DNA of 64,000 nucleotides, from assembly GCF_001194135.2 (NCBI RefSeq), contig NC_068982.1, forward strand, positions 150,373,183 to 150,437,182, in the 5' to 3' direction. Every line of letters begins with the position of its first letter. Position 1 is the stretch's first letter. The stretch comes from Octopus bimaculoides (Eukaryota). Below, one piece after another: positions 2,901-26,439 of this stretch. The position numbers and the translations under genes are program-made. The notes beneath the pieces were generated by a model. The model was not told the origin of the DNA. It worked only from the letters and a program-made list of their open reading frames with translations, and made no database searches.

Positions 2901-3346
2901 TTAGAAGACAACTTTCTGTATATGACCTCATGTTATGTAAGGGTGGAGTTTCATTAAAAAGTATGACTCAGACATTATATACGGCACAACAGTTTTGAGG
3001 AGTAGGCACAACAGTTTTGAGGAGTAATCGTAAGTTAATGATATTTACCATGAAACTGTGGGATGATTTAAATCCGAACACATTATATACAGGATAGATT
3101 AGATTGTATTCCATGTGTAAAAAGTAAAATCAATGTTTTCAAGTTTTATCAGAAGACATAGACCAACACCCACGTCAGGACTTCATGTGACTGCTGAGAG
3201 CAAGGATAAAACTTATCCCCAGACAGAATTGGCTACTAAAAGTATTCCAGAACCATGTGATGGTATTAAACTGGACAACAGATCGAGTCAATTAACCTGT
3301 CCAAATACTTTCATTATTTCCATAGTCACTACTAGATAAATATCTA

Positions 3347-4157
3347 CAGGGTGGCTCAAAAGCAGGTTTACCGTTATCACGTAGGCACTTTAAATTTCTT
3401 TTAAAACATTTTATTACATTTAAATTTCTAACTAACAATCGTATCATGTGCATATTAAACAATGTTTAATCTCTCAGATGTCCTCCTTCAACATTGAAGC
3501 AAGCCTCATCTGATGAGATGGTCTTGTCCAGATAGTCTGGTTGCTCATTAGCAATTTGGTCACATCTTTTCACAGAATTGCAGCCAGCAATCTGGGTCAT
3601 CCTCCAAAAGACCATGTACCAGTCGTAGATAGAAAGGTTTTAATTTCAGCTTATGCATTAGGCATTGCAATGTTTTCTGTATGGATAGTTCTAGAGAAGC
3701 ATGTTGTGTAGACTTCTTTGGACTGTTCACAAATGTCATAGCCACTAATATCTCATTTCTTTCAGTCACACAAGTCTTAGGGTGTCCAGATTTTGACACA
3801 TTACTCACTGAACTTCTGGTATCAAATTTATTTCTTATCCGATAAATTATCTGGCGTGAAGGTGGAGTGTGAAAGGCTTCTGGCCATGTTGTGTACACCT
3901 GCTCAGCATTTTCAGACTTCCAATACTGCTTTAGTATCCACTTTCTTGGCTCTTGATTTAAATTATTTGCCATGGCTGACACTTTATAGTACCTGAACAA
4001 AATAACAATTACAAACTAAAAAGGGAGCTTGAAAAAATTAACTAAATTAGCATAGAATAATGGTCTCATACTGTTTTATAATTAAGATCTTAACTGTTAA
4101 TATATGAATGCGAAGGAGATAGTTGAATAACTGTAAACCTACTTTTGGGCCACCCCA
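3347..4157 (-). mobile_element. Internally deleted Tc1/mariner-superfamily DNA transposon with TIRs and TA TSD
   Basis: Left end ta|cagggtggctcaaaagcaggtttac and right end gtaaacctacttttgggccacccca|ta are imperfect inverted repeats. ORF 3560-4000 (RKWILKQYWKSENA...IIYRIRNKF...SGHPKT...SPKKSTQHASLEL) resembles the HTH region of Tc1-like transposases; no catalytic domain is present. Confidence 0.85.
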
Positions 4158-4729
4158 TAAGTAGCAGCCACTGACAACCTTCTAGAGAAAGAGACGAAAT
4201 GATGAAAGAAATTAAAATATAGAAAAGATTATTTTCATGAACACTAACTTATATTGATGCTGAACAATAAAAACTTTAAGGCTAATTTCGTTCATTATTC
4301 TCCATTAAAAAAGGATAACACTAATCCAGTCTGTGAACAGAGATTTCACCTTTTCCTATGTACATTCCCCTTCTTACATGGGACAAACGTTTAAACCAAA
4401 ATTACAATAAGGGGGACAACTCTTCATCCGTTATACTTTAGCGCGGAAATAGTTTTGGCTAGACTCGAAATGTTACCAAGTGACAAATGAAAAGCGTTGA
4501 GTTATCTTGCGTCCATTTACCTGCTGCATTAAATATTAAAACTTAATAATCATCTCCCAGTGTTCATTATAGTGATACAAGCATTCAGCCTCATTCTGAC
4601 CGTATACATTTTCTTTGCAAGGCGGCGAGCTGGCAGAAATGTTAGCGTGCCAAGCAAAATGCCTTATCAGGCACCTTTTAATCCTAGAGGATTCTTTATT
4701 GGGCCTTGGACCCATCATGTATTGAGCAC

Positions 4730-5830
4730 ATATTAAATTCTATTAGATTTGACATTTTTCAAGCAATGAACAATTTTTATCAGCTTATGCAAATTGGATC
4801 TTATTGCAAAACTCCATTCAGGAATTTAATACAATTCTTTCCTAACCTTTTTTCTGTGGATATTTTCAACCATCACAACTGCCAATATACACCATTCAGA
4901 CTTCACCACCAGTTTTTTTTTTACATCACTTACTATCCACCAATTGTCCCAGACTGCTTCAGCTACCACCACCTCAATCACAACCATCAATCTACTACTG
5001 CCACAATTACTCTCACCCCAACATGAATAGTGAGAGCAGGAAGTCAAATTAGTTTTTCGCATTTATCATAGTTATGCATTTTTCTGAAAAGGCTACGCAA
5101 TATGGGTTACCTTCACAACCACTACAATAGTACTTTTAGGGATATATTGTCTAAATATTAGGCGACCCCTCCATGATACCAAAGTTCTGTTAACAACAAC
5201 TATTTCTTCTAGAATGTAGATCTCCATGTAATTATTCTTCGAAACATCAATCAATGGGTGAATCTTAGCTAGTCTGTCATCTCTTGTCTGTTTGTTCATT
5301 ATCTGAAAAACGAAAAGTTTAGGAAGTTGAAACCAGTTTCTAGACTGTTTTCCATTCACAGATTGTCTGTCCAGTATTCATGTGTAGCCCCTTTTATTCA
5401 ATTCCATCCATAACAGTAAACTCGGGAATATCTTCACTTCTTATGCAGTTGTTTAGATGTTTATTTACTATGGGCTTTGGTTTTATTTTAGCGTTTTGTT
5501 GATTTATCTTTTCTTGCGCAGTAAATAAGTAAATAAGTTTAACAGCCAAATCAAGTATTTTATCATTTACAAAGTGAAAATTTTTATCAGGTTGCAGGTG
5601 TTTGAGCATCATTTATTCCTATAAATGGAAATACTCTTTGTCTATTATTAAAGGGAGTCAAATTTGGCATGGCATCTGAAGCACTTACATCTGGAAGATC
5701 ATTCTCACCCACCTCTTTCACCTTCAAAAATATGATTAACTATTCATTCAAATCTTAGACATCACCCATCAACTTCAGATCTTGCCATCAGAATAATCAT
5801 CACTTCCACATTCTTCGTAATTTTCTCTTT
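4730..5830 (-). mobile_element. Degenerate piggyBac (PGBD-like) transposase remnant
   Basis: ORF 5093-5359 reads DDRLAKIHPLID...LVSWRGRLIFRQYIP, the piggyBac DDE-domain signature. An acidic N-terminal remnant lies near 5760-5820. Boundaries approximate. Confidence 0.75.
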
Positions 5831-6107
5831 TGTTAATTTTTTAAAGTTAACATTTTTTCTTCCAACAGTAATAAAATAGAATTTGTTAGTAAGTAAATCT
5901 GGAAAATAATACAAATGAAATAAGCATATTTGTATATACTAATAATTATTTGACGTTTTTACACAAAGAGGATTGTGTATCATCAATACCAGTATTAAGT
6001 ATCAATACCAACTACTGATAAAAAAATTTGTAAAATCTTCGGTATGTTGAACTGTCCAGCCCTGTGTTTACAAGTATAGGTTTTTGTCAGTCTTCCAAAT
6101 CTACTCA

Positions 6108-6206
6108 AGAGAACTCAGACATCCAAGAAAGGAAGGTGACCTTCACAGAACACATCTCGGGTGGAAACCGCGAACAAATATGTTCAATACATCATCATTG
6201 TTCTCT
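6108..6206 (-). ncRNA. SNORD14: U14 box C/D snoRNA, copy 1
   Basis: Minus strand reads agagaac-a-ATGATGA(box C)...TTCGCGGTTTCCACC(domain A)...CCTTTCTTGGATGT-CTGA(box D)-gttctct, with a 7-bp terminal stem. Both antisense elements match those of vertebrate U14 (CATTCGCAGTTTCCACC; CCTTCCTTGGATGTCTGA). By the D+5 rule the guide targets the C in 18S ACAU[C]CAAG (human Cm462 / yeast Cm414). Confidence 0.93.
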
Positions 6207-6671
6207 GAAGCATCAAAAGCTGGGTTAAGAGGTCAGAATGACAAAATTAGCGTATGATATATCCTTAATAACTGTGTAAACGTCCTATACATGAATAAGT
6301 GTGAGCCATGAAATAGTACTGGTGTTATATTAAAAACACCTAGTACAGTGTTGATATGAGGAAGGGCATCCAGCTATAAAAACCAAGCCAAAACAGACAA
6401 TGGAACCTAAAGCACTCCCTGTCCCTGCTAGTTTATGTGAAGCCATTTAACCCATGCCAGCATGGAAAACTGACACGAAAAGTTGATAAACAATTTTGAA
6501 ACTTCTTAATGAATAAATGAGATGTTGATAGTGGATATGAATACTGTAAGCTTCAAAAAGCTTGTCATGCCAGAATTCAGCTAATGTATTCAACATTGTT
6601 TACAGCAATCAAACTTTACCAGTTAAAAGAAAATGAATGGTCAAATGAGTATAGCATCAGACTGCTGCAGA

Positions 6672-6770
6672 AGAGAACTCAGACATCCAAGAAAGGAAGG
6701 TGACCTTCACAGAATACATCTCTGGTGGAAACCGCGAACAAATATGTTCAATACATCATCATTGTTCTCT
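6672..6770 (-). ncRNA. SNORD14: U14 box C/D snoRNA, copy 2
   Basis: Same boxes, terminal stem and both 18S-antisense elements as copy 1; differs only in the central variable region. Confidence 0.93.
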
Positions 6771-7076
6771 GGAACATCAAAAGCTGGGTTAAGAAGCCAG
6801 AATGACAAAATTAGCGAATGATATATCCTTAATAATTGTGTAAACGTCCTATACATGAATGGGTGTGAGCCATGAAGTACTGGTGAAGTACAGTGGAGTT
6901 GATATTAGGAAAGGCATCCAGCTATAGAAATAGATGGAACCTAAAGCACCCACTGGCCCTGCTAATTTGTTAAGCCAGCATGGAAAGCAGACACCAAAAG
7001 TTGATAAATGATACATACATTTATCGAAACCACATTAAAGTGAATCACTGAATTTTGACATACTAGGTGTCATCTT

Positions 7077-9146
7077 TTAACCTTTTCATTACCAAACCAC
7101 CCAAAAACATTTTGGTTATGACCAAGGCAAAAACCAGCCATAATCGCATTCATATTTAAATAAGAATATCAGGGCAAATCTCAGTACATTCATGAAAACA
7201 CGTGATTATACTGTGTAAACAGTTCAGCTACAGTTTTGTACAACAATCGACCTGTTATTTTAATTGTGAATTTTGAGAGATTTTTTTTTCCAAATTTGCT
7301 CCTGTTGTGTTTTCAAAATTTGCAATTCTGACCAAAAAATGGATACGAATTTCATTGTCAAGCAGCGAGTCAGAATTTGAAGGACTTTCCACTGAAGACC
7401 TTGATAAATCTAACTCTAACTGAAAAAACAAAAAAGCATGTGGTATTTGATAATGAATGTTTCATTTCCCGAAAGTGAAAGCAGTGAATCCGAGAGCTCC
7501 AATGACAGCGATAAAGAAAATAAATTGGTACCTGAATGGAATAAATTTAAAAACGCTTTCTTTCAGTGATTTTTCTGAAAGAAACTGGACCAAGTCTTTC
7601 CCAGGAGAGCAAAGCTTTGGACTATTTCTTTTTACTTCTTCCTATGTACCTATTTGAAATAATTATGGTGGACAGTTACGCTGAAAGTAAACTAAGTGTA
7701 AAAAAGGATAGTTTGTGGTTTCCCACAAGCTTAAATGAAATTAAGGCATATTTTGCAATAAATTATGGGCATCAGAAAGTTACCCAAAATTACTGGAATA
7801 GTGATGAACCCTTTGGAGACAAATGTCTCGAGTATCATGACAAGGACGTGATTTTTGAAATTGATTCAATATTTACAGGAGACACGTGGAGAAACAAATT
7901 TTGATCCCTTATTTAAGATAAGGCCCCTCATTGACTGTGTTCAAAACATACAAAACAGTTTATAAACCAGGGAGATATCTATTGATGATGGTATGGTGGG
8001 CTATAAAGGTGGAGTGCGTTTTTGACAATATATGCCAAGAAAGCCCACAAAATGGGGGAGGGTCAATGTTTGGAAGAATTGTGAATCAAATACTGGGTAC
8101 TGCTCTGGATTTGAATTTTATACTGGAAAAAAGAGACAATTATGTCAGTCAGCACGGCCACATGTGGATGAAAATGGCACGCCATTTGTGAACATGGGTG
8201 GTGTACACTGGCTGAATCACATGTCTTATCCAGTTGGCAGACCGGAGATGGCAATATCTCATTTGATATATAAATGAGTAATACCATATGCTATCGCTCG
8301 AAAGCGATGCAACCATCTGCAGTTCTGAGCAGATACAGCAACACAACTAAGAGCTGGTTAATCCTCAAAAAAAATAACTGTAGGTAGAAAAAGCAAAGCC
8401 TGCCAGAGTGATATCCTACTGAATTCAGCTGGTCTCCATAAATTAGAAAGAAAAAAGAAAAAAAATCGAGGGTCGCAAAAGCCTTCATCAAAAAAGGAAA
8501 GCTCCTGTTGAAACAACTTTCCAATGTGCATTCTGCAAGGTTGCATTATGTAGAGCAGGGTGCTTTACAAGTTTTCATGATAGGAATATTGTTTGATTTG
8601 TATATATGTGATTTGATTTAATATTTTCAAAAATTTACTTGGCTTTAATTTTTGTTTAATTTTAATTTACTTGTTATTGTAATTTACCTGTAAAGTGAGT
8701 GACAAATTGATTAATTTTTTTTGTAAATCATTATTGTATATTTGTGTATGTGGGAGAGCTTATTTAATCTCGTTCATGGTGTGTATTTTGTTTTCTAGTT
8801 TTCTTCATACCTTTATGGTGCACCTGTTTTGTGGTTAAATTTACCTGATGAATCCAGTATTGTGCACAACTCTTCTATAGTAAAATTTTGTTGTATACCC
8901 AATTGAATATTAGCTAATAACCCATGTTCTATATCAATGTTTGAACAAAGATTTTAATAATTTTATATTTTGTTGAATTTACCTGTAATTAGTCACTTTG
9001 TGACAAAAATTATGGTATAGAATTGGTAGAGAACCTTTTCATTAAATTATCTTCCAGAAATCACATAAATATGCTGATAAATAAAAAAGAGAGTTGTTTA
9101 ATGAAACCAGACTAAATTTATGATTATGTTAGAAATTAATTGAAAC
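7077..9146 (+). mobile_element. Degenerate piggyBac element (PGBD4-like), right end truncated
   Basis: Begins ttaa-ccttttcattacc. Coding remnants include an acidic N-terminus, the RQYMPRKPTKWG.VNVWKNCESNTGYC motif (8020-8110) and a C-terminal Cys-rich QCAFCKVALCRAGCFTSFH (~8522-8578). No right TIR found. Confidence 0.85.
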
Positions 9147-9157
9147 AAATCTACTCA

Positions 9158-9253
9158 AGAGAACTCAGACATCCAAGAAAGGAAGGTGACCTTCACAGAA
9201 CACGTCTCGGGTGGAAACCACGAATAAATATTTTCAACACATCATTGTTCTCT
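9158..9253 (-). pseudogene. SNORD14: U14 snoRNA copy 3, probably decaying
   Basis: Clear U14 homolog, but a 3-nt deletion changes box C to ATGATGT and domain A reads TTCGTGGTTTCC. Box D and its guide are intact. Confidence 0.75.
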
Positions 9254-9618
9254 GAAGCATCAAAAGCTGGGTTAAGGTCAAAATGACAAAATTAGCATAT
9301 GATATATCCTTAATAATTGTGTAAACATTCTATACATGAATGGGTGTGAGCCATGAAAAAGTACTGGTGTTACATTAAAAGCAGCTAGTAGAGTGGAGTT
9401 GATATTAGGAAGGGCATCCAGCTATAAAAACCAAGCCAAAACAGACGATGGAACCTAAAGCATTCCCTGGCCCTGCTAGTTTATGTTTAGCCATTTAACC
9501 CGTGCCAGCATGGAAAATGGACACGAAAAATTGATAATGGTTACTTTCGCATCAAGATTTCTCTAAGCCAGGCTAAAGTGAATCACTGAATTTTGACATA
9601 CTAGGTGTCATCTGTTAC

Positions 9619-9647
9619 CGTAGGTTCTTAGTATAGATGTAATTCAG
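9619..9647 (-). other. Candidate 29-nt micro-exon between U14 copies 4 and 3
   Basis: attgttttacAG|ctgaattacatctatactaagaacctacg|GTaaca. Confidence 0.4.
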
Positions 9648-9828
9648 CTGTAAAACAATTTTGATACTTCTTAATGAATAAATGAGATGTGGATGTGAAA
9701 ACTAAGCTTTAAAAGGCTTGTCATGCCAGAATTCAGCTAATGTATTCAACATTGTTTACAGCAATCAAACTTTACCAGTTAAAAGAAAATGAATGGTCAA
9801 ATGAGTATAGCATCAGACTGCTGCAGAA

Positions 9829-9925
9829 GAGAACTCAGACATCCAAGAAAGGAAGGTGACCTTCACAGAATACATCTCTGGTGGAAACCGCGAACAAATA
9901 TGTTCAATACATCATCATTGTTCTC
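9829..9925 (-). ncRNA. SNORD14: U14 box C/D snoRNA, copy 4
   Basis: Intact box C, box D, domain A and D-box guide; gagaac/gttctc terminal stem. Confidence 0.92.
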
Positions 9926-10374
9926 AGCATGAAAGCAGCAACAGAAATAGTTACAGCAATGAACACTGGTCTATCATAGTGAAATATGAAGTGACCAACA
10001 ATAGATCATCATAATAATGCTAGTGGCATTTAGTCATAATTGAGATATAACAGCAACATCCTTTTTGTGTCTATGCGAAAGTAGTGAATTCATGTTCTCA
10101 CAAGAATGGACAATAATATTTTGTTTACCCTCTGTGGGAGATAATCTGGACAGTCAAGAAACGAACCACATACATCAAGTTAACTTCACACAGATACACT
10201 TTTTATGTAATAGAATAACTATAGCATACTATGAAGGCAAGATAATAGCCTAGTGAAAAATAAATGTGCACAAAATCAGTCAGATATCTTAAGTAACAAA
10301 TACAAGTTACTGTAGTGCTGTTCACAGTACTTGTACATATATCACACTTTCATATATTAAAGCTCAACTTTACA

Positions 10375-10440
10375 CCAATCAGATAAATCAAGTCTCCACA
10401 GAAGTTTCAGAACAGGTCTGTGAGATTATCATCATGTTGG
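10375..10440 (-). ncRNA. SNORD25: U25/snR56-family box C/D snoRNA (guide for 18S Gm, human G1490 / yeast G1428)
   Basis: Minus strand reads ccaac-ATGATGA-taatc-TCACAGACCTGTT-CTGA(D')-aacttct-GTGGAGA(C'-like)-cttgatttat-CTGA-ttgg, with a ccaa/ttgg terminal stem. The 13-nt element is complementary to the conserved 18S AACAGGUCUGUGA. The layout matches human U25 as I recall it (TTCACAGACCTGTACTGA...GTGAGGA). Confidence 0.88.
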
Positions 10441-11187
10441 AAAAACCAGTACTAACACAAGCATGAATTTTGGGCATCTAGTGTACATTATTTGTGTATT
10501 TCAATAATTATAATGAAGAGTCAATGACACAAAACTAGAAAGCTTTAACCACCCACATGTCAATGAACATAAACCAACACAGTTAACCAACATGAATACT
10601 GTTCATAGTATTGTAAATAGAAACTAACCAAAACTCAAGAGAACAAACATTGTGAAAGATAAGAATTCAGACAATCAAGAAAGGATTTCAACAAATCCAT
10701 CATGAATTTAACCGAAATATTACTATGGCATAACTTTTTTACATGCACTTTGTTAATATTCATGAAGGAGGAATGCATTTCCCGTTTTAAGCGAAACGCA
10801 GTATTGTTTAAAAAAACTATACACCAGCCTTCATTGTCATGATCCAAATCAGTTTTTCTGTCCTGTATAAGACGATATCTTTGTAAGATTCTAGTTGGAT
10901 TATTTGCCAGCAACCAAAGCACAGAACAAGCTATTTTTATTCAGAGGATTATTAAGACATTTAGGTGTAAGATTCTAATTCTAGTTATATTCTAATTAAA
11001 ATGAGACTATTTCAAATTGTTTCATTTCAGATCCACTCTAAATAGCATCTTAATATGACCTTCATTGCAAGCATAACATCACACAGATCTAAATCCAACT
11101 ACTGAAAACTTACTACAGAAACACATTAGAAAAGCTTTCTCAATAGAAGTCTACCTCTACAAAATAGATTATCGATTAACAGCATTT

Positions 11188-11266
11188 GAGGTCAGTTACT
11201 GTCTAGTGAGCATGGTCTCATTGATGTTACATCTCATGAAAACCCAATTAATCTTCATCATTCCTC
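11188..11266 (-). ncRNA. Candidate orphan box C/D snoRNA (79 nt)
   Basis: Minus strand reads gagga-ATGATGA-agattaattgggttttc-ATGA(D')-gatg taa catc(mini-stem)-aATGAGA(C'-like)-ccatgctcactagacagtaa-CTGA-cctc. It has a gagg/cctc terminal stem, perfect C and D boxes and a D'-hairpin-C' arrangement. A plausible 3' splice site lies 87 nt downstream. No rRNA or snRNA target recognised. Confidence 0.62.
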
Positions 11267-11847
11267 AATATGCAATTTAGCTTAGAATGAAATATTGGAT
11301 ATAAACCAGAAGACCGGAATCCTACACTGGAAGCATCGTTTGGATCAAAATTTACATAGGAAACCCATCTGATAGTTGGGTTCGTATGTGTGATAGGAAG
11401 CCCATCAATCAAACATTTCTCATAAAATCCATTTATGTACCTAAATCTTTCATAAATTATTCAAGATCTTGATCAGGCATCTTTTACCTTATAATACCAA
11501 ATACCATCATACTACTGTCCTGATTTTTTGATGCTGTATTTAGATTCATTTCCACAGCAATGGGGAAATCCTAATTCATTGAACTTTTAAATCATGCTTG
11601 CATTTCATGATGTTACTGAGTTGCAATTTTCTCTGCAAGTTTAACCAAATGGATAGCAATTTCAAATCCAGATTAACAGAAATAAATGCGATTTCACCAG
11701 TTCTATTATCGAGGAGAGATTAGAGCTAAATGTCTATCAGTATAGTGATGAAAAACTAAGAAAACAATTGAAACTAGCATAAATTGTTAGTCTTGCATAC
11801 TTTAATTGATTAAATCTATGGGGGGGAAAAAACTGACCATGAATGCT

Positions 11848-13541
11848 GTAGGTTGGCATGAAAGTAACTTCGGTTTTTTAGTATGTTTTTTGGTTTATGT
11901 TTAACACCTGGCCAACAAAACTAACAAGAAAAAAAGTGTATCAAACGAATATGAGAATGAAAATTTGCACCAACGAACCGGTTATAAACATTCAATACAA
12001 CTCTCCTACTCCTAATGGTGCGTTGGCACATTTTTTTAAACTGTAAAACACTCACAGTTCTTCCTACTCCCATTAGGCTTAAAACTTGCTCATTAGAATC
12101 TGAGAGAATTTGTAATTAATCAAAAATATTAAACAAGGAAGGTATCAGATCAAAAAATAATTCATGAATTTGTCTTCGAAAGTTCTCCCACCCCCTTGAA
12201 AAAAAATTGTCCTCACAAATTTCGTTGGTTCCTTGGCTCAAATTTTTGTTCTCATTCGTTTAATACATATTTTACACTTTTTTAATTTTCGTTGCTGGGT
12301 GTTCATGTAAACATTAATACTTTTTTTTTTCCCCCATATTTGGAATGATCTTCAATCAATTATATATTTTCCATTTTGATCGATGACCTTTTGCCATCTT
12401 TCTGGTAACTTCATGATTCCGCACTCATAGAACTTCTGGTCCTTATCAGCCAAAAACTCGAGCAAGTGCGATTTCAGGTCGTCATCATTATTGAAAATAT
12501 TATCATTCAAAGAATTTTGCAAACTTCGAAATAAATGGTAATCTGATGGTGCAAGGTCAGGGCTATATGGTGGATGTGACATCACTTCCCAACCAAGCTC
12601 CAATAACTTTTCACGAGTTGGCAAAGACGTGTGTGGTCTAGCATCGCCATGGTGGAATATGATTCCTTTACCATTTGCCAATTCTGGCCGTTTTTCAATG
12701 ATTGCTTTATCCAGTTTCATTAGTTGTTGACAGTAAACATCTGAATTGATTGTTTGGTTCCTTGGAAGCAGCTCAAAATACACAACACCTTTGTAATCCC
12801 ACCAAATTGACAGCATAACCTTTTTTTGATGCATTTCAACTTTCAATATGGTTTGTGTTGGTTCTTTATGCTTGGACCATGATCGTTTTCGATTGATGTT
12901 ACTGTAGACAATCGATTTTACGTTACCAGTGATGATTCGTTTCAAAAAAAGGTCGATTTCATTGCGTTTGAGATGCAAATCGCAAATGTTGATTCGTTGT
13001 GTTAAGTGAATCTCTTTCAATGTATGTGGAACCCAAATTTCGAGCTTCTTAACGAATCCAAGACATTTTAAGTGATTTTCAATTGTTGTATGTGATACAT
13101 TTAACCTCTCTGCAATCTCTCGCACAGTTATATGACAATCAGATTCAATTATAGCTTTGATTTGATCATCATCAACTTCAGTAGGTCGACCAGAACGCTG
13201 GTCATCTTTGAGTGAAAAATCTCCAGAACGAAATTTTTTAAACCATTTCTGACATGTGCGTTCTGTTAAGCAATCAACACCATAAACTTCACATATCTCT
13301 TTGTGAGCCTGAGCAGCTTTCTTCCCTTTACGGAAATAAAAAAGCAAAATATGGCGAAAATGTTCGTTTTTGCGTTCCATGTTGAACAGTCGTAAACAAA
13401 ACTACGCGCAATTTGCTTCTAAAGCAAATAACAGCTATCAAATGGCAAAAGGAAAAATCATAACTAAGTCATTCAAAAACAAAAATCTTAATTCTATGAT
13501 GATAATTTGCGAAAAATGAAACTACTTTCTTGCCAACCCAA
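11848..13541 (-). mobile_element. Mariner element (mellifera-type by resemblance) with TIR-like ends
   Basis: Right end aaaatgaaactactttcttgccaacccaa|ta. An inverted-repeat-like ggttggcatgaaagtaacttcggttttt lies near 11848, about 500 bp beyond the ORF stop, so it may belong to a second element. Confidence 0.75.
12352..13380 (-). CDS. Mariner transposase, open 342-aa ORF, catalytic motifs altered
   Basis: WVPHTL and PYSPDLAPSDYHLF motifs are present. The canonical TGDEKW is TGNVKS and the canonical HDNARPH is HGDARPH. Confidence 0.9.
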   Translation of the reverse strand: MERKNEHFRHILLFYFRKGKKAAQAHKEICEVYGVDCLTERTCQKWFKKFRSGDFSLKDDQRSGRPTEVDDDQIKAIIESDCHITVREIAERLNVSHTTIENHLKCLGFVKKLEIWVPHTLKEIHLTQRINICDLHLKRNEIDLFLKRIITGNVKSIVYSNINRKRSWSKHKEPTQTILKVEMHQKKVMLSIWWDYKGVVYFELLPRNQTINSDVYCQQLMKLDKAIIEKRPELANGKGIIFHHGDARPHTSLPTREKLLELGWEVMSHPPYSPDLAPSDYHLFRSLQNSLNDNIFNNDDDLKSHLLEFLADKDQKFYECGIMKLPERWQKVIDQNGKYIID

Positions 13542-13563
13542 TAGTTCTTTTATTTACATTCAC

Positions 13564-13609
13564 CTGTCCTGCATACTCGGTCGTCACCAACCGCTGACAT
13601 TGTCAATAT
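13564..13609 (-). ncRNA. Predicted internal exon of the snoRNA host gene, containing an ATG (MSAVGDDRVCRT...)
   Basis: Minus strand reads ttcttttatttttcAG|atattgacaATGtcagcggttggtgacgaccgagtatgcaggacag|GTgaat. It is a 46-nt GC/CpG-rich island between a strong acceptor and a donor. Confidence 0.6.
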
Positions 13610-14465
13610 CTGAAAAATAAAAGAACATTCGTATAAGTATAACAGTTTGATATATTTTAATTTACACGACGTACGGGTATAAGAACGACTGTGGCAAAGG
13701 TCTATACAATACACCAAATACATGGCATACACTAGTGTATAAACACTTTGTCTAATATAATTTAGCAATTATTATACACAGTCATCCAACATATGAAGAC
13801 TGCTCTAGCAAAATTGCCGTTACCAGTTTTCAAATTATTTCTATAAGCTCTCACCATCTGCGTAGGGTAAATAAAACTAAACAATTTTTTCATAACATAG
13901 CAGTTTTAATATCAAGCACTAAAAAGAATAGCAATCCTTGAGATGATAGCCATGCATTAGCATTTGAAAATTTATCTAGGTGTTCGGCATTCTCCGGAAA
14001 TCATGATAAAAATTCATGTGTACAAAAGATTCATATACATACACAAGAGATTCGTAAAAAAAAAAATAAGATGCACAAGTGTGCGTGTGAATATGTTCAG
14101 CTATCTCGTGTAGATCAAGCAATTTTTGGCAAATAGATTTTTCATTTGGCGTTAAGTAGATGAATACCGAAAGATAGCCAGAACGGTGCTAATGCAGTTT
14201 CGTATCTCTCCTTCAAAAATGTCATTATTTTGAAAAAAAAATTTCGTATTCCTATGTCGGAAATTACGAATATGCAAAGAAAGAAAATTTTGTAATTCCC
14301 CCACCTCATCACACTTTTAAATATTTGATTTTGTTTACTTTAAAGAGATCGTAGCGAATTAACGAACGTGCAAATCGAAATTAAATAGACAAAAACATTG
14401 AAGTGAAAAGAATTTGGGCTATTAGCTGTCAGAAGTGAAAGTGCTCACTGCTAGTGAAGTATCTG

Positions 14466-14475
14466 NNNNNNNNNN
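14466..14475. other. Assembly gap (10 N) with sequence duplicated on both sides
   Basis: aagtgctcactgctagtgaagtatctg occurs on each side of the gap. Confidence 0.9.
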
Positions 14476-14923
14476 AAGTGCTCACTGCTAGTGAAGTATC
14501 TGTCTGTCTGCCTGCATGCCTCTGTGTGTCCGTCTGTCTGTCTGCTGGTTTGAGTTGATTTATTTTTTTAACTTATGTGGAGGAACAGGGGACTTATCTT
14601 TTAAAGTTGGCGTAAAGCGAAAGAGACAGCAATTGATGTGTGTTGAAGAAGCGTGCGAGACCTAAGTAGGTGAAGTTCTGTTAGTGTGCGTGAAGAGACA
14701 GAGGCAACATACACGCAAAATTCCGAATGCAATAAACCATATGTATTTGAGGGGAAATTGTCATAAGCAGGTCACAATATTAACCACAATGAGAAAAGTT
14801 GAAACGGTTTATAGTATCTAATCAAGACTAATGATTTATAAACTATAGCCAACACAAGGGAGGTGAAATTGTCATGGACCTAATTATTCAGTACAGCAAA
14901 CTCAAGAGCGAGAACTGCACAAA

Positions 14924-15022
14924 AGAGAACTCAGACATCCAAGAAAGGAAGGTGACCGTCACAGAACACATCTCAGGTGGAAACCGCGAACAAATATGTT
15001 CAATACATCATCATTGTTCTCT
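14924..15022 (-). ncRNA. SNORD14: U14 box C/D snoRNA, copy 5
   Basis: Intact boxes, stem and both antisense elements. Shares the aaaagctgggttaag...gatatatccttaata flank with copies 1-3. Confidence 0.92.
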
Positions 15023-15159
15023 GGAACATCAAAAGCTGGGTTAAGAGATGAGAATGACAAAAAAGTAGCTCATGATATATCCTTAATAACTGTGTAAACC
15101 TTCTATACATGAACGGGTTTGAGCTATGAAAATATTCTTAATCTGCATTTTCCCCACGT

Positions 15160-15832
15160 NNNNNNNNNNNNNNNNNNNNNNNNNNNNNNNNNNNNNNNNN
15201 NNNNNNNNNNNNNNNNNNNNNNNNNNNNNNNNNNNNNNNNNNNNNNNNNNNNNNNNNNNNNNNNNNNNNNNNNNNNNNNNNNNNNNNNNNNNNNNNNNNN
15301 NNNNNNNNNNNNNNNNNNNNNNNNNNNNNNNNNNNNNNNNNNNNNNNNNNNNNNNNNNNNNNNNNNNNNNNNNNNNNNNNNNNNNNNNNNNNNNNNNNNN
15401 NNNNNNNNNNNNNNNNNNNNNNNNNNNNNNNNNNNNNNNNNNNNNNNNNNNNNNNNNNNNNNNNNNNNNNNNNNNNNNNNNNNNNNNNNNNNNNNNNNNN
15501 NNNNNNNNNNNNNNNNNNNNNNNNNNNNNNNNNNNNNNNNNNNNNNNNNNNNNNNNNNNNNNNNNNNNNNNNNNNNNNNNNNNNNNNNNNNNNNNNNNNN
15601 NNNNNNNNNNNNNNNNNNNNNNNNNNNNNNNNNNNNNNNNNNNNNNNNNNNNNNNNNNNNNNNNNNNNNNNNNNNNNNNNNNNNNNNNNNNNNNNNNNNN
15701 NNNNNNNNNNNNNNNNNNNNNNNNNNNNNNNNNNNNNNNNNNNNNNNNNNNNNNNNNNNNNNNNNNNNNNNNNNNNNNNNNNNNNNNNNNNNNNNNNNNN
15801 NNNNNNNNNNNNNNNNNNNNNNNNNNNNNNNN
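15160..15832. other. Assembly gap (N run)
   Basis: Directly visible. Confidence 1.
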
Positions 15833-16059
15833 AATTATTTCACCTTTTTGTTTTGGTGAAACTTTCACAAGCTGCGGGGAAAATTTCACTTTCGGGCATA
15901 AGGTGGAGGACAGGGTCTTTTTTTTTTTGTTTTTTTAGAATCAACGTAAATTTACCAGAAATAACTGAAAGATATCTTTGCAGAAAGGTGAGTAGATTGA
16001 TTACACAATTTCATTCATTGTTATCAGTTTTGTGAGATTTGGCTGTTGTTTCTAGCATA

Positions 16060-17010
16060 TAAATAGCCCGCTTGAAGGGGGGTTATTTTTCTTTTGAGAA
16101 ATTGAAATTTTACATTTTTTTTTTTTCAGAATCAATCTCCATATTTTGTACGTATTTCGCCAGAGAAAAAAAATTCCGAAAAATGAAGAAACGGAGAGTG
16201 GGGAATTTGAAATTTTGAACTTGTGTTTTACAAGTATTCTATTATCAATGTTATTGATAATAACATTGTGAAAATAATCTGTACTTACCCATGTGGTAGA
16301 TTTGTTGATTATTTTCAACTCTGGAAGCAGGACGGAAAGCCTGCATGAACTATATTGCTTTAGTTCTCTTGGGGGCCCCCCACACTCGTTCGATGTTCTG
16401 TGTTAACTAACGCGTTTGCCAGATGGACGAAGTTCTGACTATGCTTAATTTGTAAATGCGTATAACCTAATTTTGGAGAGAACTATAAGCACCCCAACAG
16501 TCACTATAAATAATGGATCCTTGACGGATGTGGCGTTTGATTAACGGGATAAGAATTGAAGCATTTCGTCTTTCCCCTTCGCCACACTCCAATGACAGAG
16601 GTATCAAACTTTACAAGCCTATCTCGGTTGTATTTGCTTCGAACCAAACATAATGAAGGCAAGCTTCCGAACAGAGAGATCGCCAATCAAAAGACGTGGC
16701 AAGTGTTGTATCTAAATTTTCCATAACAGATTTATGTGGCCAATTTTCTGTTAGGAAATTATTAACTTCCACGCTCCAAAAATGTGTTCTTTAGGATAGA
16801 CACTGAAAACACACATTCTGTTTTCCTTCGTCTCCAACGACGAACCATCTTCCAACATCGAAACATATTAGCCCCATTACCGAACAATGCAAGGTGAATT
16901 ACAAGTTGGGCAATTCACAGATGCAGGAATCTCGGCCCTCAATATAGTGTATTCCTGTAAAAAACAGAAAATATGCCAAAGGGGGTTCGTCCATGATTTT
17001 TACCTCCACT
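16060..17010 (-). mobile_element. Merlin (IS1595/ISXO2-like) transposase remnant
   Basis: Broken minus-strand frames read RSKYNRDRLVK...VIGVWRRG, KRHIRQGSIIYSDCWGAYSSLQ and HSQNFVH, typical of Merlin DDE transposases. The end gtccatgatttttacctccact (to 17010) resembles the TIR of the element at 24080-25186. Confidence 0.75.
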
Positions 17011-17829
17011 GAATATATATATATATATATATAAAGTAAAAAGTACACTCGGNNNNNNNNNNTATATATATAAAGTAAAAAGTACACTCGGTATTTAGGG
17101 TTAGGGTTATAGCTACTTAGGCTCGCCAGATAGTCTCCTTCATGCAATTCATATACGAGTGTTTCCGTAGTTTTATAGAGAGTCCATGTGCTACACATAA
17201 GAGCGAACTAAGCCACGTGGTCGCACAACGAACTTGCAACACCGAGCCATGTCGGCGTCTATAATCAATATATACTCATGAGGAAAACTACATCCATGAT
17301 TTGATTATTAAAGAATAATTTCAGCGGAATGGGTGATAATGGAAAGCATTATTTGAAAAATCATTTTTCCGAAACAACCATAAAGAATTGTACTTTCTAA
17401 CCAAATCATCCCTTCAATAGCAGATTCCGTTTTTCGTTCACGGTAACTGACGTTTTGGTATGTTGCAACATCTAAATTCTCAGTACGCCAATTAAGAAAC
17501 AAAGCGGAAAAGGTGACGTTCTAGCATACCCATGTATAGCTAAGACAAGTGAGGCGCTAAAAACGTGCGAAAGCAAATTGTTTAGTACTGCACTAATAAT
17601 TTTTACAAGGTTTTACAAAATTATTAAAATTCAATCAAAAACATTCACCACGTGTTATGATTAAGAATCTTGTAACAATAAAATAATATAATCATTAAAA
17701 TAAAATATTCATAGCTCTTGCTGCAGATATTAATTCTATCTAATATTTTAAATGACTATATTTCAATATTCGTTCACAAGATAATTGCTACCATGAATGA
17801 ATGTGTGACAAAACAGGAGCGATACTTAC

Positions 17830-17864
17830 GCGACGTTAACTCGGAGACGGACACCAGTGAAAAG
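17830..17864 (-). ncRNA. Predicted exon 1 (5'TOP) of the snoRNA host gene
   Basis: Minus strand reads atcatc-C+1TTTTC-actggtgtccgtctccgagttaacgtcgc|GTAAGT: a TCT-type initiator followed 35 nt later by a consensus donor. No ATG in the exon. Confidence 0.6.
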
Positions 17865-17881
17865 GATGATTGAATGAGATA

Positions 17882-18128
17882 CCGGAAGTTCGTAGATAAG
17901 CACAAACCAATGAAAGTAAGATAAAAGCAGTATTTGTTAAAATACATAGATAAACTACTATTGTAATTAAATAAATATTTTTAAATATTACAAATACTTA
18001 TAGTGCGTAATAAAGTAAAATACTTTCATTTGAGAAAATATATCCAAGTTAAATTATTTTGCGTGATACTAGCCCGTGTTTCTGAAGTCACTTCCGGAAT
18101 AATGTTAGCCCCCTCCCTCTTCCCGCCC
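17882..18128. promoter_or_regulatory. CpG-retaining promoter region with two opposed ETS/GABP sites and a GC box
   Basis: CCGGAAGT at 17882-17889, ACTTCCGG at 18090-18097 and CCCGCCC at 18122-18128. ETS/GABP sites are typical of ribosomal-protein/TOP promoters (established). Confidence 0.55.
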
Positions 18129-19559
18129 TCAGAAATGTTTAAATAAACTCTTTTCGGTACGAGTTTAATTTTCAGTTTTTGCTCGAATAAATCCGTTTTT
18201 ATTTTTTAAATTCTTTTCAGCCTTGCAGCCACTTAGAGTATGTGCGGGTACAGAAGAAACTAACTTTTAAGTAAAATAATTTAAGAGTACGAAGTACTAA
18301 AGATTCAAGTCAGTCTTAAAACCCAATACCGAAAGTAGAAGAGAGGTTCGCCACTCTAGCGAGTCTTACTGGATTCGTAAACCTTCGGCGCTTCTTCGTT
18401 TCTAAAGCTCATGAAAGTGAAAAGTATTTAACTTGTCGAATATGATTTCAAAAGAAATAAAAAACCTTTTAGGTACAGTAAAATAGTGGTCAGTATTGTA
18501 CAGTTTAGATGCTCTGGAAGCATCTAATACGATATTTCAGTGAAGCAATCAAAATTGTTGGCCTCGTGTTTTATCAGAAGCTATTATTTAAATAGGATGC
18601 ACCAAATATTTCATGATTACCTTCTTATTTCGTGTGAACAAAGCTTCGAATGTAAAAAGTTTACAGCAAATACACGATATGTTATTACTTTTAGGCAAAA
18701 TAATAGTTTTTATTGTTTCATCACACTCGATGACTGTGTTTCGCTGAGACAGTCATTTGCTAGAAAACTCGGCGATAAAACAGAAGTAGAAGAATTGTTT
18801 TCTTTGGAGTGATATAAAAGTAATAAAAACTTTGTGACAAAATGGTGATAGTGAAATAATTTTTAAATGCTTTGAGTTATTTTATAATTTATTTAATAAT
18901 AAACTAGAACATAAGGATTAGGCATCATAATACGGTTGAAAGGATTTAACAAATTGTGCACTTGTTTCTAAGTAAATTCCTAGAAACAAAGAATATGATT
19001 GCCTGAGGTACTATACATGGTTGGAAATTTTCTTTTACATTACTCCATGTCTTTTGAATTATGTTTGTGTGGACAGATTTCTTGTGTTTAGAAAATAGTC
19101 TCATGATTTGGTCACCACACCAACAATCAGTTACAATACATGTAGCTGGTAACACTTGATCAGTCTTGAGTGGCAATAAAGTAATGCAGATATCGATCAG
19201 GGACAGGCACAAGGACACACTTAAGGGTCATGCGTTCCCCCATACCGAGAATTCTCGATAATAACTACACTGGGATTTACAGTTCATGAACTTCGACTCT
19301 TCTGTTTCTACGATTATATTGTTTCTACCAATCTGTACAGGGTGATCAATACACTAAATAGCACATACATTTCAAAAAGGTTATACCAGAACTGTTGTTT
19401 CTCTACTGACACTAAAATGCTTCATAACAACATATTGTTTACTGTCAAGTGCTAAACCAATAAATATATTCTACTACAGATGACACTATGGGATATGAGA
19501 CTCGAAGAAAGAATCATGTCTAATACTTTGGTACTGTCTGCATACATAACGCCTCCAGG

Positions 19560-22680: not shown

Positions 22681-24079
22681 ATATATGAGCATGTCTAGAC
22701 ATGCAACTACATGCATAAGAATGCATACATAAAACAAAACATAGTAATCTGCACATATACATACATACACACACACACATACCCTATTGATGTTGTGGAA
22801 ATTCCAATGAAGGAAGCTTGGATCTAGGTTAGAAACTAGCTCTTTCTCTATTGGCAAGAAATTTGAAGTAAAATTGAATAATGACAGACATACATACATA
22901 CATACATACACCCATCTTTTATCTTTTACTTGTTTCAGTCGTTAGACCATGGTCAACTTTGTTTCAATTAAAGTGTATTTTATGTGTGTGTGTATATATA
23001 CATATATGTATTAAAGAAAGCAAAAAATAAAACAAAAATGTTAGTGTTCAGTATGTTGGCGATGAGACATGGTTAAACAAAGTTGTACATCATCTCCCTC
23101 TTTCTCTCTTATTATTACTCCCACTGCCACCATCAACATACTACTTTTAATAAAAATCAACTATCCCTAAATTTCTTTGTCTCTCTTTCTCTCTCTGTTT
23201 GTCTTCGCCACCGCCCTCTTTTACTCTCACCCTAGCACGAGGAAGTGTCAGTGAATAGTGAGAGAGGAGGGCAAAGTGTTACACACAAATTAGTTTTTGC
23301 ATTTATTATATTAGATATTTCTTAGTTGTAGTGCACCTAACTGTTTTCATATTTCATATATATATATATATATATAGACAATATTAAAATAAGGACACAT
23401 TCGCACACGCAAATATATATATATTCATTTATTCACTTCAAGCTGTTTAAAGTATGTACTTCCAGTTTATCTCTCCACGTGGTACTTTCAGGTCTCTTTG
23501 AAATCGTCCTACTCTCATTCATTTCTCTCCCCTTTAGCAGTTCGCTTGGTAAGTTGAGTATAAATCTGCTTCATTTTGATCATTCATCTCGTAATTTTTA
23601 AAAAGAGACAAAGTATATATCCACCATTTACTTACATTCTGATTTCCTATAGTGTAAAACAGTTATATTTCCCCGTATCGTTCAGTTAATTTTCGTTATT
23701 ACGTTGTACTTTCAAAACTTTGCACTCAACGAAAATTTACGCGAAGGCTTCTGTCAACATGGCCGTCGGCCTTTTATTTCGAACAAATGGCCAGCATTTT
23801 TTAGTATAAAAGAAAATAATGTACTTTTTTAAATATTGGAAATTCCTTAATGTGGTCAGAGTGATTAGTTCAATAGAATTCAAGGCTGGAAAAATCTGGA
23901 AACCATAAACGAAACGATACCCATTTTAGCAAAGGGATTCAGTTTATTTTTATTTCATACAGTTAAAAATATTTGGCTGTTTTCTTCAGGTAAAAAGCCG
24001 AATGAATTAAGCGTACACAAGCTTAAGATACAGAATAGTGGTTCAAACGATATTCTGGTTTTTCTGAGATTGATCATTC

Positions 24080-25186
24080 GGCAGAAGTAAAGATCATGGA
24101 CCGCGCCCATCCCCTTTGGGATTTTTTTTTTTTTTTTACAGGAACACACTATATCGAGGGCGAAAATTCCGAATCTGCATTTCAAAATTTAAATCCCCAC
24201 CCAAAATTCTTAAATTTTCACTTAAAAAGCGGGGGGGCGAAATACAGAGATTGATTCTGAAAAAATAAACACCCCCTCCCCTCCGTCCTATGACAAGAAG
24301 TGAAATTAGTGTTTTCTCAACTAATGCTTCACGCATGCATAAAATTATAAAATAGACGCAAAAAGTATCTAAACAGAAAACCTGACATCCTAGAAACACG
24401 TTCTCAAAATTTTAANNNNNNNNNNNNNNNNNNNNNNNNNNNNNNNNNNNNNNNNNNNNNNNNNNNNNNNNNNNNNNNNNNNNNNNNNNNNNNNNNNNNN
24501 NNNNNNNNNNNNNNNNNNNNNNNNNNNNNNNNNNNNNNNNNNNNNNNNNNNNNNNNNNNNNNNNNNNNNNNNNNNNNNNNNNNNNNNNNNNNNNNNNNNN
24601 NNNNNNNNNNNNNNNNNNNNNNNNNNNNNNNNNNNNNNNNNNNNNNNNNNNNNNNNNNNNNNNNNNNNNNNNNNNNNNNNNNNNNNNNNNNNNNNNNNNN
24701 NNNNNNNNNNNNNNNNNNNNNNNNNNNNNNNNNNNNNNNNNNNNNNNNNNNNNNNNNNNNNNNNNNNNNNNNNNNNNNNNNNNNNNNNNNNNNNNNNNNN
24801 NNNNNNNNNNNNNNNNNNNNNNNNNNNNNNNNNNNNNNNNNNNNNNNNNNNNNNNNNNNNNNNNNNNNNNNNNNNNNNNNNNNNNNNNNNNNNNNNNNNN
24901 NNNNNNNNNNNNNNNNNNNNNNNNNNNNNNNNNNNNNNNNNNNNNNNNNNNNNNNNNNCAAAAACCATCTTTTCAAATTTTTTAATTTTAACTTTTTTTC
25001 GGGGAGCGGGGAATTGAAAATTTTGAAAATATGGTTTTTAGCATATTCAGAATCTCTGTCATCGAAAACAGGAATCCACTGAAAAAAAAAAAAAAAGGTC
25101 AATTTTTTTTTCGTGCCGATGTATTTGTTAGACATTAACCGAAAAAAACCGCAAAGGGGCTGCTGTCCATGATCTTTACTTCCGCC
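24080..25186. mobile_element. Merlin-type element spanning an N gap, with GG termini and 8-bp TSD
   Basis: TIRs ggcagaagtaaagatcatggac and gtccatgatctttacttccgcc. Flanks gatcattc (24072-79) and aatcattc (25187-94), 7/8 identical. Confidence 0.82.
24416..24958. other. Assembly gap (N run)
   Basis: Directly visible. Confidence 1.
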
Positions 25187-26439
25187 AATCATTCTTTAAT
25201 TTTTTTGCGCGTAGGTTTTGCTGTTACATTGTCGAAGCCAATAGATGAGCGAAGTTACCGCTATCTCTGGGCAGGGTTTTCTTTTTTCTCATTGGCAGGG
25301 TCCTCTGAACAAACGTAGTACACATTAGAGTACTTATCTCATTCATCATATCTGATATCTAAGCAAAGTCTATCCAAATGTAAGACAAATATCATTGCTT
25401 CCTCTCATCTACTGCTGCACTCAGTCAAAATAGAAAAGCTCTACTTAGTTGTAAGAACCAGATTTCCCTCAAATCAATGGAAGGACATAGGGGATGAAGT
25501 AGCTCTGGATACATTGAAAAGTAAAGACAATGTTCGCGACTGGAATTTCTCCTAACTATAATTCTCAGCGTTCCTTGTAACGGACATTACCCTTTACATA
25601 AATTTTATAAATACTCAGGCTAAATATCAGCCTACAGAAGATTAGTTAAGGACACTGACCCCTATAAATATTACTATTGATGTGACAAAAGTCTGAATGT
25701 ACTGTGCAATTCATGTTCGAGCAGTCTTTATTAGTTGAATGACTGTGTATAATAATTGCTAAATTATATTAGGCAAAGTCTTATACACTAAAATGTAATG
25801 TCAGGTACTTTGCATACTATATAAGACCTTGCTACAACCATTATACCTGTATGTGTAAATTTTAAAATCTAACATCTAATTGTTATAGTTGGATATTATT
25901 TTATATTTTAGGTAATACCGACTGAGCAAAATATCCAGGATGGGTGGATATCCCGTGAAATGACAGTTTTCTTGAAAATATTCCTATATCAGTTTCAAAA
26001 CTAATTTGCCTTGAGTTTAAAACAGTGGTTCCCAACCTTTTCACTACCAAGGACCCCTTTTATTTAAATGAGTTGGGAACTTGTTTAAAATATGTGCAAG
26101 AACAACAGTTGTTTTTAATCTAGTTTTGTTTGCAATTTGAGGTGTTTTACATTTGTTTTGTTTGCAATTTACAAATCTTGGTTGAATTAAATTCACCTCA
26201 AGTTCAAATCTCACGAGATTAGATTTGTACAACTAATTGTAAAGTGCTATACACTTTGTGTTTTCACACCCCATCGTTATCTCCCCTCTCTCCAACTGAG
26301 GTAACCATGTATCTAAAAGATACTTATTTCTATCCTTCTGTTCATACTCTTCTCATCACTTGGTACATAACCATCTCCCTCAATATACCCCCCCCCATTC
26401 AGTTGAGGGGTAAGTTACTTAGTGACCTCAGTGTTGCCA

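Follow-up and report, generated by a model that had tools for sequence, protein, structure and literature searches.

What kind of gene carries the box C/D snoRNA (small nucleolar RNA) genes that are gathered on the minus strand of this stretch of Octopus bimaculoides DNA? The window (the whole stretch analysed, 64 kb in length) is 100% identical to O. bimaculoides assembly GCA_001194135.2, chromosome CM046602.1, in which window position x corresponds to position 150,373,182 + x on the same strand. A first-pass annotation had taken the locus for a cephalopod counterpart of the non-coding snoRNA hosts UHG and GAS5. The cephalopod origin is borne out by this identity, and the seven box C/D genes, all on the minus strand and within 9 kb, are a real snoRNA cluster. 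It appears to be a tandemly expanded cluster of four U14 genes predicted to be functional, one decaying U14, one U25/snR56-type guide and one orphan. We consider, with moderate confidence, that it probably represents an unannotated non-coding host gene of the UHG/GAS5/Uhg type with a 5' terminal oligopyrimidine (5'TOP) start.

The box C/D snoRNA cluster

Rfam was searched twice, at the curated gathering thresholds and then in E-value mode. At the gathering thresholds the whole window returns no matches. In E-value mode five full-length minus-strand matches to SNORD14 (RF00016) are found, at 15019-14927, 9923-9831, 9250-9161, 6767-6675 and 6203-6111, with scores of 45-49.8 bits and E-values of 4e-8 to 9e-7. 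All five fall short of the gathering score of 64 bits, because the central hairpin of the vertebrate-weighted SNORD14 model is missing here while the functional elements are kept. A further full-length match, to snR56 (RF01188, clan CL00049), lies at 10439-10377 on the minus strand and scores 37.5 bits against a gathering score of 54 bits (E 0.038 over 16 kb, 0.0024 over 1 kb). The expected SNORD14 and SNORD25 assignments are thus recovered as SNORD14 (five times) and snR56 in E-value mode, but at the gathering scores none is. Since all of the snoRNAs lie below those scores, default annotation overlooks the cluster.

A strict motif scan, which uses no family model, looked for RUGAUGA, CUGA 40-140 nucleotides (nt) further on and, no more than 2 nt away from the boxes, a terminal stem with 5 bp or more. 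Across both strands of the window it gives six matches compared with 0.2 in shuffled sequence, namely four of the U14 copies, the orphan at 11186-11268 and one low-complexity match at 39036. A relaxed scan gives 10 minus-strand matches where ~0.9 are expected per strand, and seven of these are the genes of the first-pass annotation. The five U14 copies, the U25 homolog and the orphan, all claimed for the minus strand, are found by an independent motif scan, and the U14 copies and the U25 homolog also by Rfam in E-value mode. All seven could be located, but the U14 at 9250-9161 has a degenerate box C (UGAUGU) following a 3-nt deletion.

Four of the U14 copies are intact: copy 1 (14924-15022), copy 2 (9829-9925), copy 4 (6672-6770) and copy 5 (6108-6206), the last being the final snoRNA of the cluster. 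Each has AUGAUGA, CUGA and a terminal stem of 6-7 bp, which in copy 1 is the 7-bp AGAGAAC/GTTCTCT. Copies 1, 4 and 5 were called from Rfam scores (49.7, 49.8 and 48.8 bits) together with the motif scan, copy 2 from Rfam and alignment, and copy 3 (9158-9253), with box C UGAUGU, from a score of 45 bits and alignment. In the SNORD14 alignments box C, domains A and B, box D and the terminal stem are all placed at high posterior probability, and the boxes, stem and both domains align over the full model, as does the guide of the U25-type RNA in the snR56/SNORD25 clan. Unlike the SNORD14 model, the octopus RNAs have no central hairpin and carry one change in each domain. Domain A reads UUCGCGGUUUCCACC against a consensus of UUCGCAGUUuCCaCC (one A-to-G change, at high posterior probability), and domain B reads CCUUUCUUGGAUGU, followed by CUGA, against a consensus of CCUUCCUUGGAUGUCUGA (one C-to-U change). 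Domain A is the 18S-complementary element required for 18S processing, and the octopus domain A would act in processing of 18S rRNA. The C-to-U change in domain B would presumably pair as G-U with the conserved 18S sequence ACAUCCAAGGAAGG. Through domain B, the octopus U14 would guide 2'-O-methylation of an 18S cytidine that corresponds to human C462, the Cm site targeted by U14 (C423 in chicken). In chicken, the 3' guide of U14 is 14 nt long (PMC2653536). Variants in domain A among the copies are transitions that would preserve G-U pairing.

Copies 1, 2, 4 and 5 are 96-100% identical, with differences confined to the central variable stretch, where the copy-specific variants are CCUGAG, CCAGAG and CCCGAG. 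The 5' flanks common to U14 copies are 79-90% identical, and the 3' flanks of copies 2 and 4 are 87% identical. A 282-nt duplicated block (6488-6769 and 9653-9925) has 14 differences, none of them in the 93-nt snoRNA (P about 0.004 under uniform divergence). These four copies have therefore been maintained, through selection or conversion. Every difference between copies 3 and 5 is borne by copy 3, whose identity of ~91-93% equals that of its own flank, and this copy is probably relaxed or decaying.

The duplication history can be followed in the flanks. A module of two U14 genes (9925-9146) has been duplicated to 6769-6096 at 91-95% identity, and older duplications at 77-81% connect the regions upstream of copies 3, 4 and 5. 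Some 110 nt of the upstream flank of copy 1 are 91% identical with those of the same three copies. Copies 1, 3, 4 and 5 have a common 125-nt upstream flank, which copy 2 lacks. Copy 2 is identical in sequence to copy 4, yet its upstream DNA is unrelated past ~11 nt and instead matches the flank of a U14 copy on the plus strand. The 125-nt flank is hence no required private promoter, and this pattern argues that it is hitch-hiking DNA. The plus-strand copy, a sixth U14 (27304-27389; 37.3 bits), has box C UGAUGC and lies 9.4 kb beyond the putative host start at 17864. Its counterparts in O. vulgaris and O. sinensis have CUAA in place of box D and a domain B that is short by 3 nt, so this copy is a decaying pseudogene. 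A scan of metagenomes for the lineage-specific U14 pattern returned no matches.

A repeat resembling a short interspersed element (SINE; …GGCATCCAGC…CCCATGCCAGCATGGAA…) is abundant in the window, and antisense copies of it are part of the duplicated U14 units. It lies at 6300-6490, 6880-7010 and 9360-9540 on the minus strand and at 26400-26600, 27000-27290 and 38900-39000 on the plus strand. Its sequence strings gave no matches in the literature.

The U25/snR56-type RNA (10375-10440, minus strand) is identified by its snR56 match and by its guide. The D' guide, UCACAGACCUGUU followed by CUGA, matches the family consensus exactly over CACAGACCUGU. It is presumably complementary to 18S AACAGGUCUGUGA and would guide methylation of the first G there, which corresponds to G1490 in human and G1428 in yeast 18S. 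The orphan (11186-11268, minus strand) is a box C/D candidate from the strict motif scan. It has a 6-bp stem (UUGAGG/CCUCAA), box C AUGAUGA, a D'-like AUGA, a small internal hairpin, a C'-like AUGAGA and box D CUGA. Against Rfam no family can be assigned to it, the best match being snoR64 at an E-value of 0.5.

Putative promoter, exons and an H/ACA-like RNA

The first-pass annotation placed a TCT initiator and an ETS site about 2.8 kb upstream of the nearest snoRNA. Both are present where it put them, and 17864 minus 15019 gives the same 2.8 kb. The start motif, C+1TTTTC (TCT/5'TOP-type) at 17864-17859, belongs to the pattern YC+1TYTYY and is followed 35 nt on by GTAAGT, which agrees with the donor proposed earlier. 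Putative exon 1 (17830-17864, minus strand) accordingly begins with C+1TTTTC, is 35 nt long without an ATG, and ends in CGC directly before the donor GTAAGT. Splice sites were scored with our own position-weight matrices, built from approximate metazoan splice-site frequencies, and ranked by percentile among all AG or GT sites; this donor scores 6.7 (97th percentile).

An ETS/GABP-type core, ACTTCCGG, lies on the minus strand at 17882-17889, 18 nt upstream of the putative start. The motif CCGGAAGT occurs at two sites only in the window, 17882-17889 and 18090-18097, where 0.25 are expected. The CpG observed/expected ratio is 1.1-1.6 at ~17000-18450 compared with 0.33 window-wide, and this region, which also holds the ETS cores and E-boxes, is the only CpG-island-like stretch near the cluster. 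Downstream of the start motif, at distances of 210 and 650 nt, CACGTG E-boxes are found at 17649-17654 and 17214-17219. The promoters of Uhg genes in flies and SNHG genes in humans typically have E-boxes bound by Myc (PMC4430873). These features are good circumstantial evidence for a housekeeping-type promoter in the region of 17864.

On the plus strand, 18090-18135 contains the second ETS core ACTTCCGG followed by pyrimidine-rich CCCTCCCTCTTCCCGCCCTC, 230 nt from the minus-strand start motif, and may form a bidirectional promoter with a divergent transcript. A likeness between 17960-17780 (minus strand) and 25000-25700 (plus strand) was suggested by MAFFT and was rejected. Its score of 25 compares with 19.9 +/- 2.2 in shuffles and was reached by 12 of 300, and neither O. 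vulgaris nor O. sinensis conserves the O. bimaculoides sequence at this place.

The clean 46-nt internal exon described at 13564-13609 holds up in the scoring. This putative exon 2 (minus strand) has an acceptor scoring 8.2 and a donor scoring 9.0, at the 98th and 99th percentiles. Between the two proposed exons, in putative intron 1, lie three assembly gaps, none of which touches a snoRNA or a proposed exon. The 10-N gaps at 14466-14475 and 17053-17062 each have an exact 27-29-nt duplicate on both sides. They are scaffolding artefacts of overlapping contig ends kept in the chromosome-level assembly, and the sequence is thus continuous across them, bar the duplicated letters. The 673-N gap at 15160-15832 has no flank overlap and is therefore a real assembly gap; it lies 140 nt upstream of U14 copy 1 and could conceal anything.

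Upstream of exon 2 lies a candidate H/ACA-like RNA (13687-13818, minus strand) with a two-hairpin fold, a hinge AAAUUA (ANANNA) and ACA at 13692-13690. Exon 2 and the 210 nt before it (13817-13564) recur in inverted, collinear form on the plus strand, in a paralogue at 25706-25943 made up of a second H/ACA-like sequence (25706-25839) and an exon-2-like mini-exon (25912-25943); collinearity was traced over 13817-13607. A 70-nt core is ~95% identical between the two H/ACA-like sequences, compared with ~75% around the core. In the plus-strand copy, 73 nt of the core are invariant in three Octopus species (with O. vulgaris and O. sinensis), the region overall being ~87-92% identical. A recognisable orthologue is also present in Argonauta hians (L001, 40460-40330, minus strand). 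The orthologous DNA compared across O. vulgaris, O. sinensis and Argonauta covers the 10 kb past RAB39B and ends ~2.8 kb before the putative promoter, and the conservation of exon and snoRNA was compared on the plus-strand paralogue only. The regions orthologous to the main cluster would fall directly below 107,390,999 of CM016860.1 in O. sinensis and directly above 106,441,311 of OX597815.1 in O. vulgaris.

All five H/ACA-like sequences, including that of Argonauta, have a 5' hairpin, a hinge of 13-14 nt, a 3' hairpin and the ACA. The hinge hexamer fits ANANNA throughout (AAAUUA in Octopus, ACAUAA in Argonauta). In the five-sequence alignment 91% of cells are paired, a value reached by six of 500 shuffles, compared with 33-45% in slid controls. 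Compensatory changes are seen at four pairs, a count that 28 of 500 shuffles equal and that is drawn from only four distinct sequences, from which the structure itself was derived. In the 5' hairpin the pocket-to-box spacing is 14-15 nt by hand count, where the rule is 14-16 nt. Rfam returns no match for this RNA. The conserved two-hairpin element is a candidate H/ACA snoRNA on evidence that is suggestive, and it probably belongs to the cluster; U14 copy 2 likewise has a plus-strand paralogue, the U14 pseudogene.

From the 3' end of the H/ACA-like RNA to a good acceptor the distance is 77 nt in the minus copy, 72 nt in the plus copy and 81 nt in Argonauta. A spacing of 72-81 nt before an acceptor is classical for intronic snoRNAs. 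The AG and GT of the plus-strand mini-exon are kept in the three Octopus species, and its interior has a 4-nt indel plus substitutions. Kept splice sites around an indel-bearing interior are what one would predict where a non-coding host harbours an intronic snoRNA, and this paralogue is the best indirect support found for exon 2. There may also be a second, plus-strand host transcript at the mini-exon, for which no promoter was found.

Probable host gene and competing explanations

In the reading that we favour, RNA polymerase II would make a single transcript of the minus strand, beginning with the TCT/5'TOP-type initiator (17864) and driven by a promoter made up of the CpG island, the ETS site and the E-boxes. 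Splicing would join short non-coding exons that are under no constraint, among them 17864-17830 and 13609-13564, and the snoRNAs would be freed by exonucleolytic trimming of the excised introns to the cores protected in small nucleolar ribonucleoproteins (snoRNPs). The idea of a cephalopod host resembling UHG and GAS5 draws support from the co-oriented C/D genes, the promoter features, the splice sites of exon 2 and the lack of any coding exon other than those of transposons.

That lack was established in several ways. A Pfam screen of 142 minus-strand open segments of at least 28 amino acids, from 2931 to 18881, found transposon domains only (piggyBac, DUF4817 and pieces of IS1595-type transposase); shorter exons and novel proteins escape such a screen. 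On the plus strand near the cluster no coding exon is seen besides transposon remnants. A tblastn search for RPS13, HSPA8 and ELOF1, with the human proteins as queries, gave nothing better than an E-value of 0.84, and the earlier statement that no ribosomal-protein or Hsc70 coding exons are visible stands. Non-coding status is presumed from the lack of recognisable domains or a conserved open reading frame (ORF) in unspliced genomic sequence. RAB39B, the neighbouring gene on the same strand, is ruled out as host. Its stop codon lies 12.9 kb upstream of 17864, so that the cluster falls outside any RAB39B intron. A weak Pfam hit to the Elf1 zinc ribbon was likewise discarded, the best ELOF1 match (8456-8539, E = 1) lying inside the stretch read as a piggyBac remnant.

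Several observations weigh against a spliced host. When acceptors 30-140 nt downstream of each C/D snoRNA are considered, the best of them do not outscore those at random positions, U14 copy 3 excepted, and after copies 2 and 4 the best acceptor is merely 11 nt from the snoRNA. The interval between the orphan and the U25-type RNA has no acceptor-donor pair passing moderate thresholds. From these scores, an architecture of one snoRNA per intron is possible. The distance from the start to the first snoRNA is 2.8 kb and includes transposon pieces and the 673-N gap, and an intact, sense-oriented mariner element lies inside putative intron 2. The 3' end of the host is undefined, and the sequence below ~5900 appears to be a piggyBac-type remnant. 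No transcript or assembly match was found for five ORFs of the locus by exact look-up or for a U14-overlapping ORF by homology search, and a 95-amino-acid ORF in the orphan-U25 interval had no matches in the representatives library. Finally, the common upstream flank of four U14 copies contains a TATA-like GATATATCAT at about -55.

The last of these points, together with the unenriched acceptors and the missing exon candidate between the orphan and U25, fits a different explanation, that there is no spliced host. Each U14 would then have a private promoter in the 125-nt flank, or endo- and exonucleases would cut the snoRNAs out of one long, unspliced polycistronic precursor, as happens in plants and yeast, and the promoter at 17864 would serve another unit. 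Tandem U14 arrays are a plant-type arrangement, and plant snoRNA clusters are processed from unspliced polycistronic precursors. However, the flank is more diverged than the RNAs and behaves as hitch-hiking duplicated DNA; U14 copy 2, U25 and the orphan all lack it; and no upstream element of the small nuclear RNA type is common to all seven genes. The strong donor 35 nt past the start motif and the conserved splice sites of the paralogous mini-exon also speak for splicing. Independently transcribed guide snoRNAs are exceptional in flies and vertebrates (PMC4430873, PMC2653536). Based on this balance, expression without a spliced host seems unlikely, though it survives best among the alternatives.

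Alternatively, the host may be protein-coding. The protein could be a small or lineage-specific one read from short exons, or its coding exons could lie below coordinate 1 or inside the 673-N gap. Exon 2 holds ACAATGTC, opening MSAVGDDRVCRT..., and its ATG has A at -3. Exons shorter than 28 amino acids and novel proteins would escape the Pfam screen, the last snoRNA lies 6 kb from the end of the window, and animal snoRNA hosts are mostly protein-coding (PMC4430873). The screen, however, shows no non-transposon domain on the minus strand and the search no RPS13, HSPA8 or ELOF1, and RAB39B is the sole protein-coding annotation in the public record of 20762-64000. More specifically, the exon-2 ATG and 14 neighbouring bases are missing from the paralogous exon, which itself differs by the 4-nt indel between Octopus species. 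A coding host is accordingly quite improbable. Least probable is that the array consists mostly of silent snoRNA pseudogenes, left by segmental duplication in transposon-rich intergenic DNA with one or two copies expressed at most: decay is demonstrable in U14 copy 3 and in the copy on the plus strand, the region is full of inserted SINE, mariner and piggyBac elements and every copy is below the Rfam threshold, but four U14 copies have perfect boxes, stems of 6-7 bp and both 18S-complementary domains and differ in the central variable region alone while their flanks have diverged by 10-20%, and the low scores are traced to the hairpin of the model.

Beyond the non-coding 5'TOP host itself, a wider scheme can be put forward tentatively, as something rather less than an even chance. 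Octopods would possess an anciently duplicated, inverted pair of non-coding hosts downstream of RAB39B. The minus locus (17864 to ~6000) would be the UHG-like 5'TOP member, with U25, the orphan and a lineage-specific expansion of U14. Both loci would keep a previously undescribed H/ACA-like RNA, from Octopus to Argonauta, 72-81 nt before a fast-evolving mini-exon, and U14 would have moved between a non-coding host here and HSPA8/RPS13 in vertebrates.

Relation to known hosts and surrounding features

Vertebrate UHG/SNHG1 hosts U22 and U25-U31. The locus resembles UHG/SNHG1 and GAS5 in having several same-strand box C/D guides, short and seemingly unconstrained exons and no recognisable ORF, and also in its putative start motif (C plus a pyrimidine run), ETS site and CpG island. 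The U25-type guide is cargo also in human UHG. GAS5 has 10 box C/D snoRNAs, 12 non-conserved exons and a 5'TOP start (PMC7400976). Unlike in UHG and GAS5, the main cargo here is U14, which in vertebrates lies within the protein-coding HSPA8 and RPS13 (introns 5, 6 and 8 of HSPA8 in chicken; PMC2653536), and the putative introns are kilobases long and filled with transposons. The exons and promoter have no sequence similarity to those of any vertebrate SNHG.

Among invertebrate dedicated non-coding hosts, Drosophila has seven non-coding Uhg genes without ORFs and with Myc E-boxes at their promoters (PMC4430873). E-boxes are similarly found here, just downstream of the putative start. The Drosophila genes have short introns with one snoRNA each at regular spacing, whereas such regularity did not emerge from the splice-site scores here. 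Orthology with the fly genes is not expected. Copy number would have grown by tandem duplication, as in plant U14 clusters and in the chicken gas5-like host, a hot spot for the expansion of snoRNA genes (PMC2653536). Unlike in plant clusters, the 5' donor and the mini-exon argue for splicing.

Mammals, chicken and flies are well known to have snoRNA hosts of the non-coding 5'TOP type (PMC7400976, PMC2653536, PMC4430873), and as of 2009 such hosts had not been found in C. elegans (PMC2653536). If confirmed, the present locus would be a documented non-coding snoRNA host in a lophotrochozoan, with U14 in a different type of host than in vertebrates. The giant-squid genome paper counted only Rfam-level snoRNA loci (PMC6962438). 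Standard cephalopod annotation misses the whole locus, with its seven snoRNAs under the gathering scores and a host without a protein. A U14-bearing host in a cephalopod would help annotation and studies of how snoRNA-host associations evolve, although unsurprising to a specialist. Copy-specific variants and decaying copies together form a small natural series on the birth and death of snoRNAs. Of further, modest interest are the H/ACA-like RNA and the pairing of paralogous loci; that RNA and the sixth U14 are absent from the first-pass annotation.

RAB39B supplies the window's sole genuine coding exon, its last one (30765-31193, minus strand; Ras family Pfam match at 3.8e-29), which is identical to O. 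bimaculoides XP_014774493.1 over residues 72-214. RAB39B transcripts are obtained from the RNA-sequencing runs SRR16213284, SRR16213285 and SRR32601320. Transcript contigs from RNA sequencing splice into 31193, and the 3' untranslated region can be traced to at least 29047. Positions 31194-64000 are RAB39B intron, with exon 1 ~1 kb past the end of the window.

The mariner transposon of putative intron 2 (11851-13538, minus strand) was identified by Transposase_1 and HTH_48 Pfam matches and inverted terminal repeats (11851-11877 and 13512-13538). It contains an intact transposase ORF of 342 amino acids (12352-13380), its end lies 25 nt downstream of the exon-2 donor, and with CpG undepleted it is probably young. 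The closest public relatives of the transposase are 85% identical, and the others are mostly from insects, also from spiders and mammals, a pattern consistent with horizontal spread. A piggyBac-type remnant (7277-8618, plus strand) lies antisense between U14 copies 3 and 4. DDE_Tnp_1_7 and zf-Tnp_2 were found among plus-strand segments, and its placement rests on a run of open plus-strand segments and the weak zinc-ribbon-type match at 8456-8539. Another piggyBac remnant (5096-5612, minus strand) and an IS1595/ISXO2-like remnant (16300-16900, minus strand) were placed from reading of translations and from pooled Pfam summaries, which give no segment of origin for any of these three placements. 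All three would lie within or beside proposed introns. For a piggyBac remnant at 43800-45400 (minus strand), Pfam matches to named ORFs confirm the assignment.

The interval that separates the cluster from RAB39B has two further CpG-rich patches, at 23500-23950 and 25000-25350 (observed/expected 1.1-1.5), the second of which is conserved in part only in O. vulgaris and O. sinensis. A weak match to a type-P3 twister ribozyme is found at 40237-40317 on the plus strand (26.8 bits, where the gathering score is 39.9; E 0.3).

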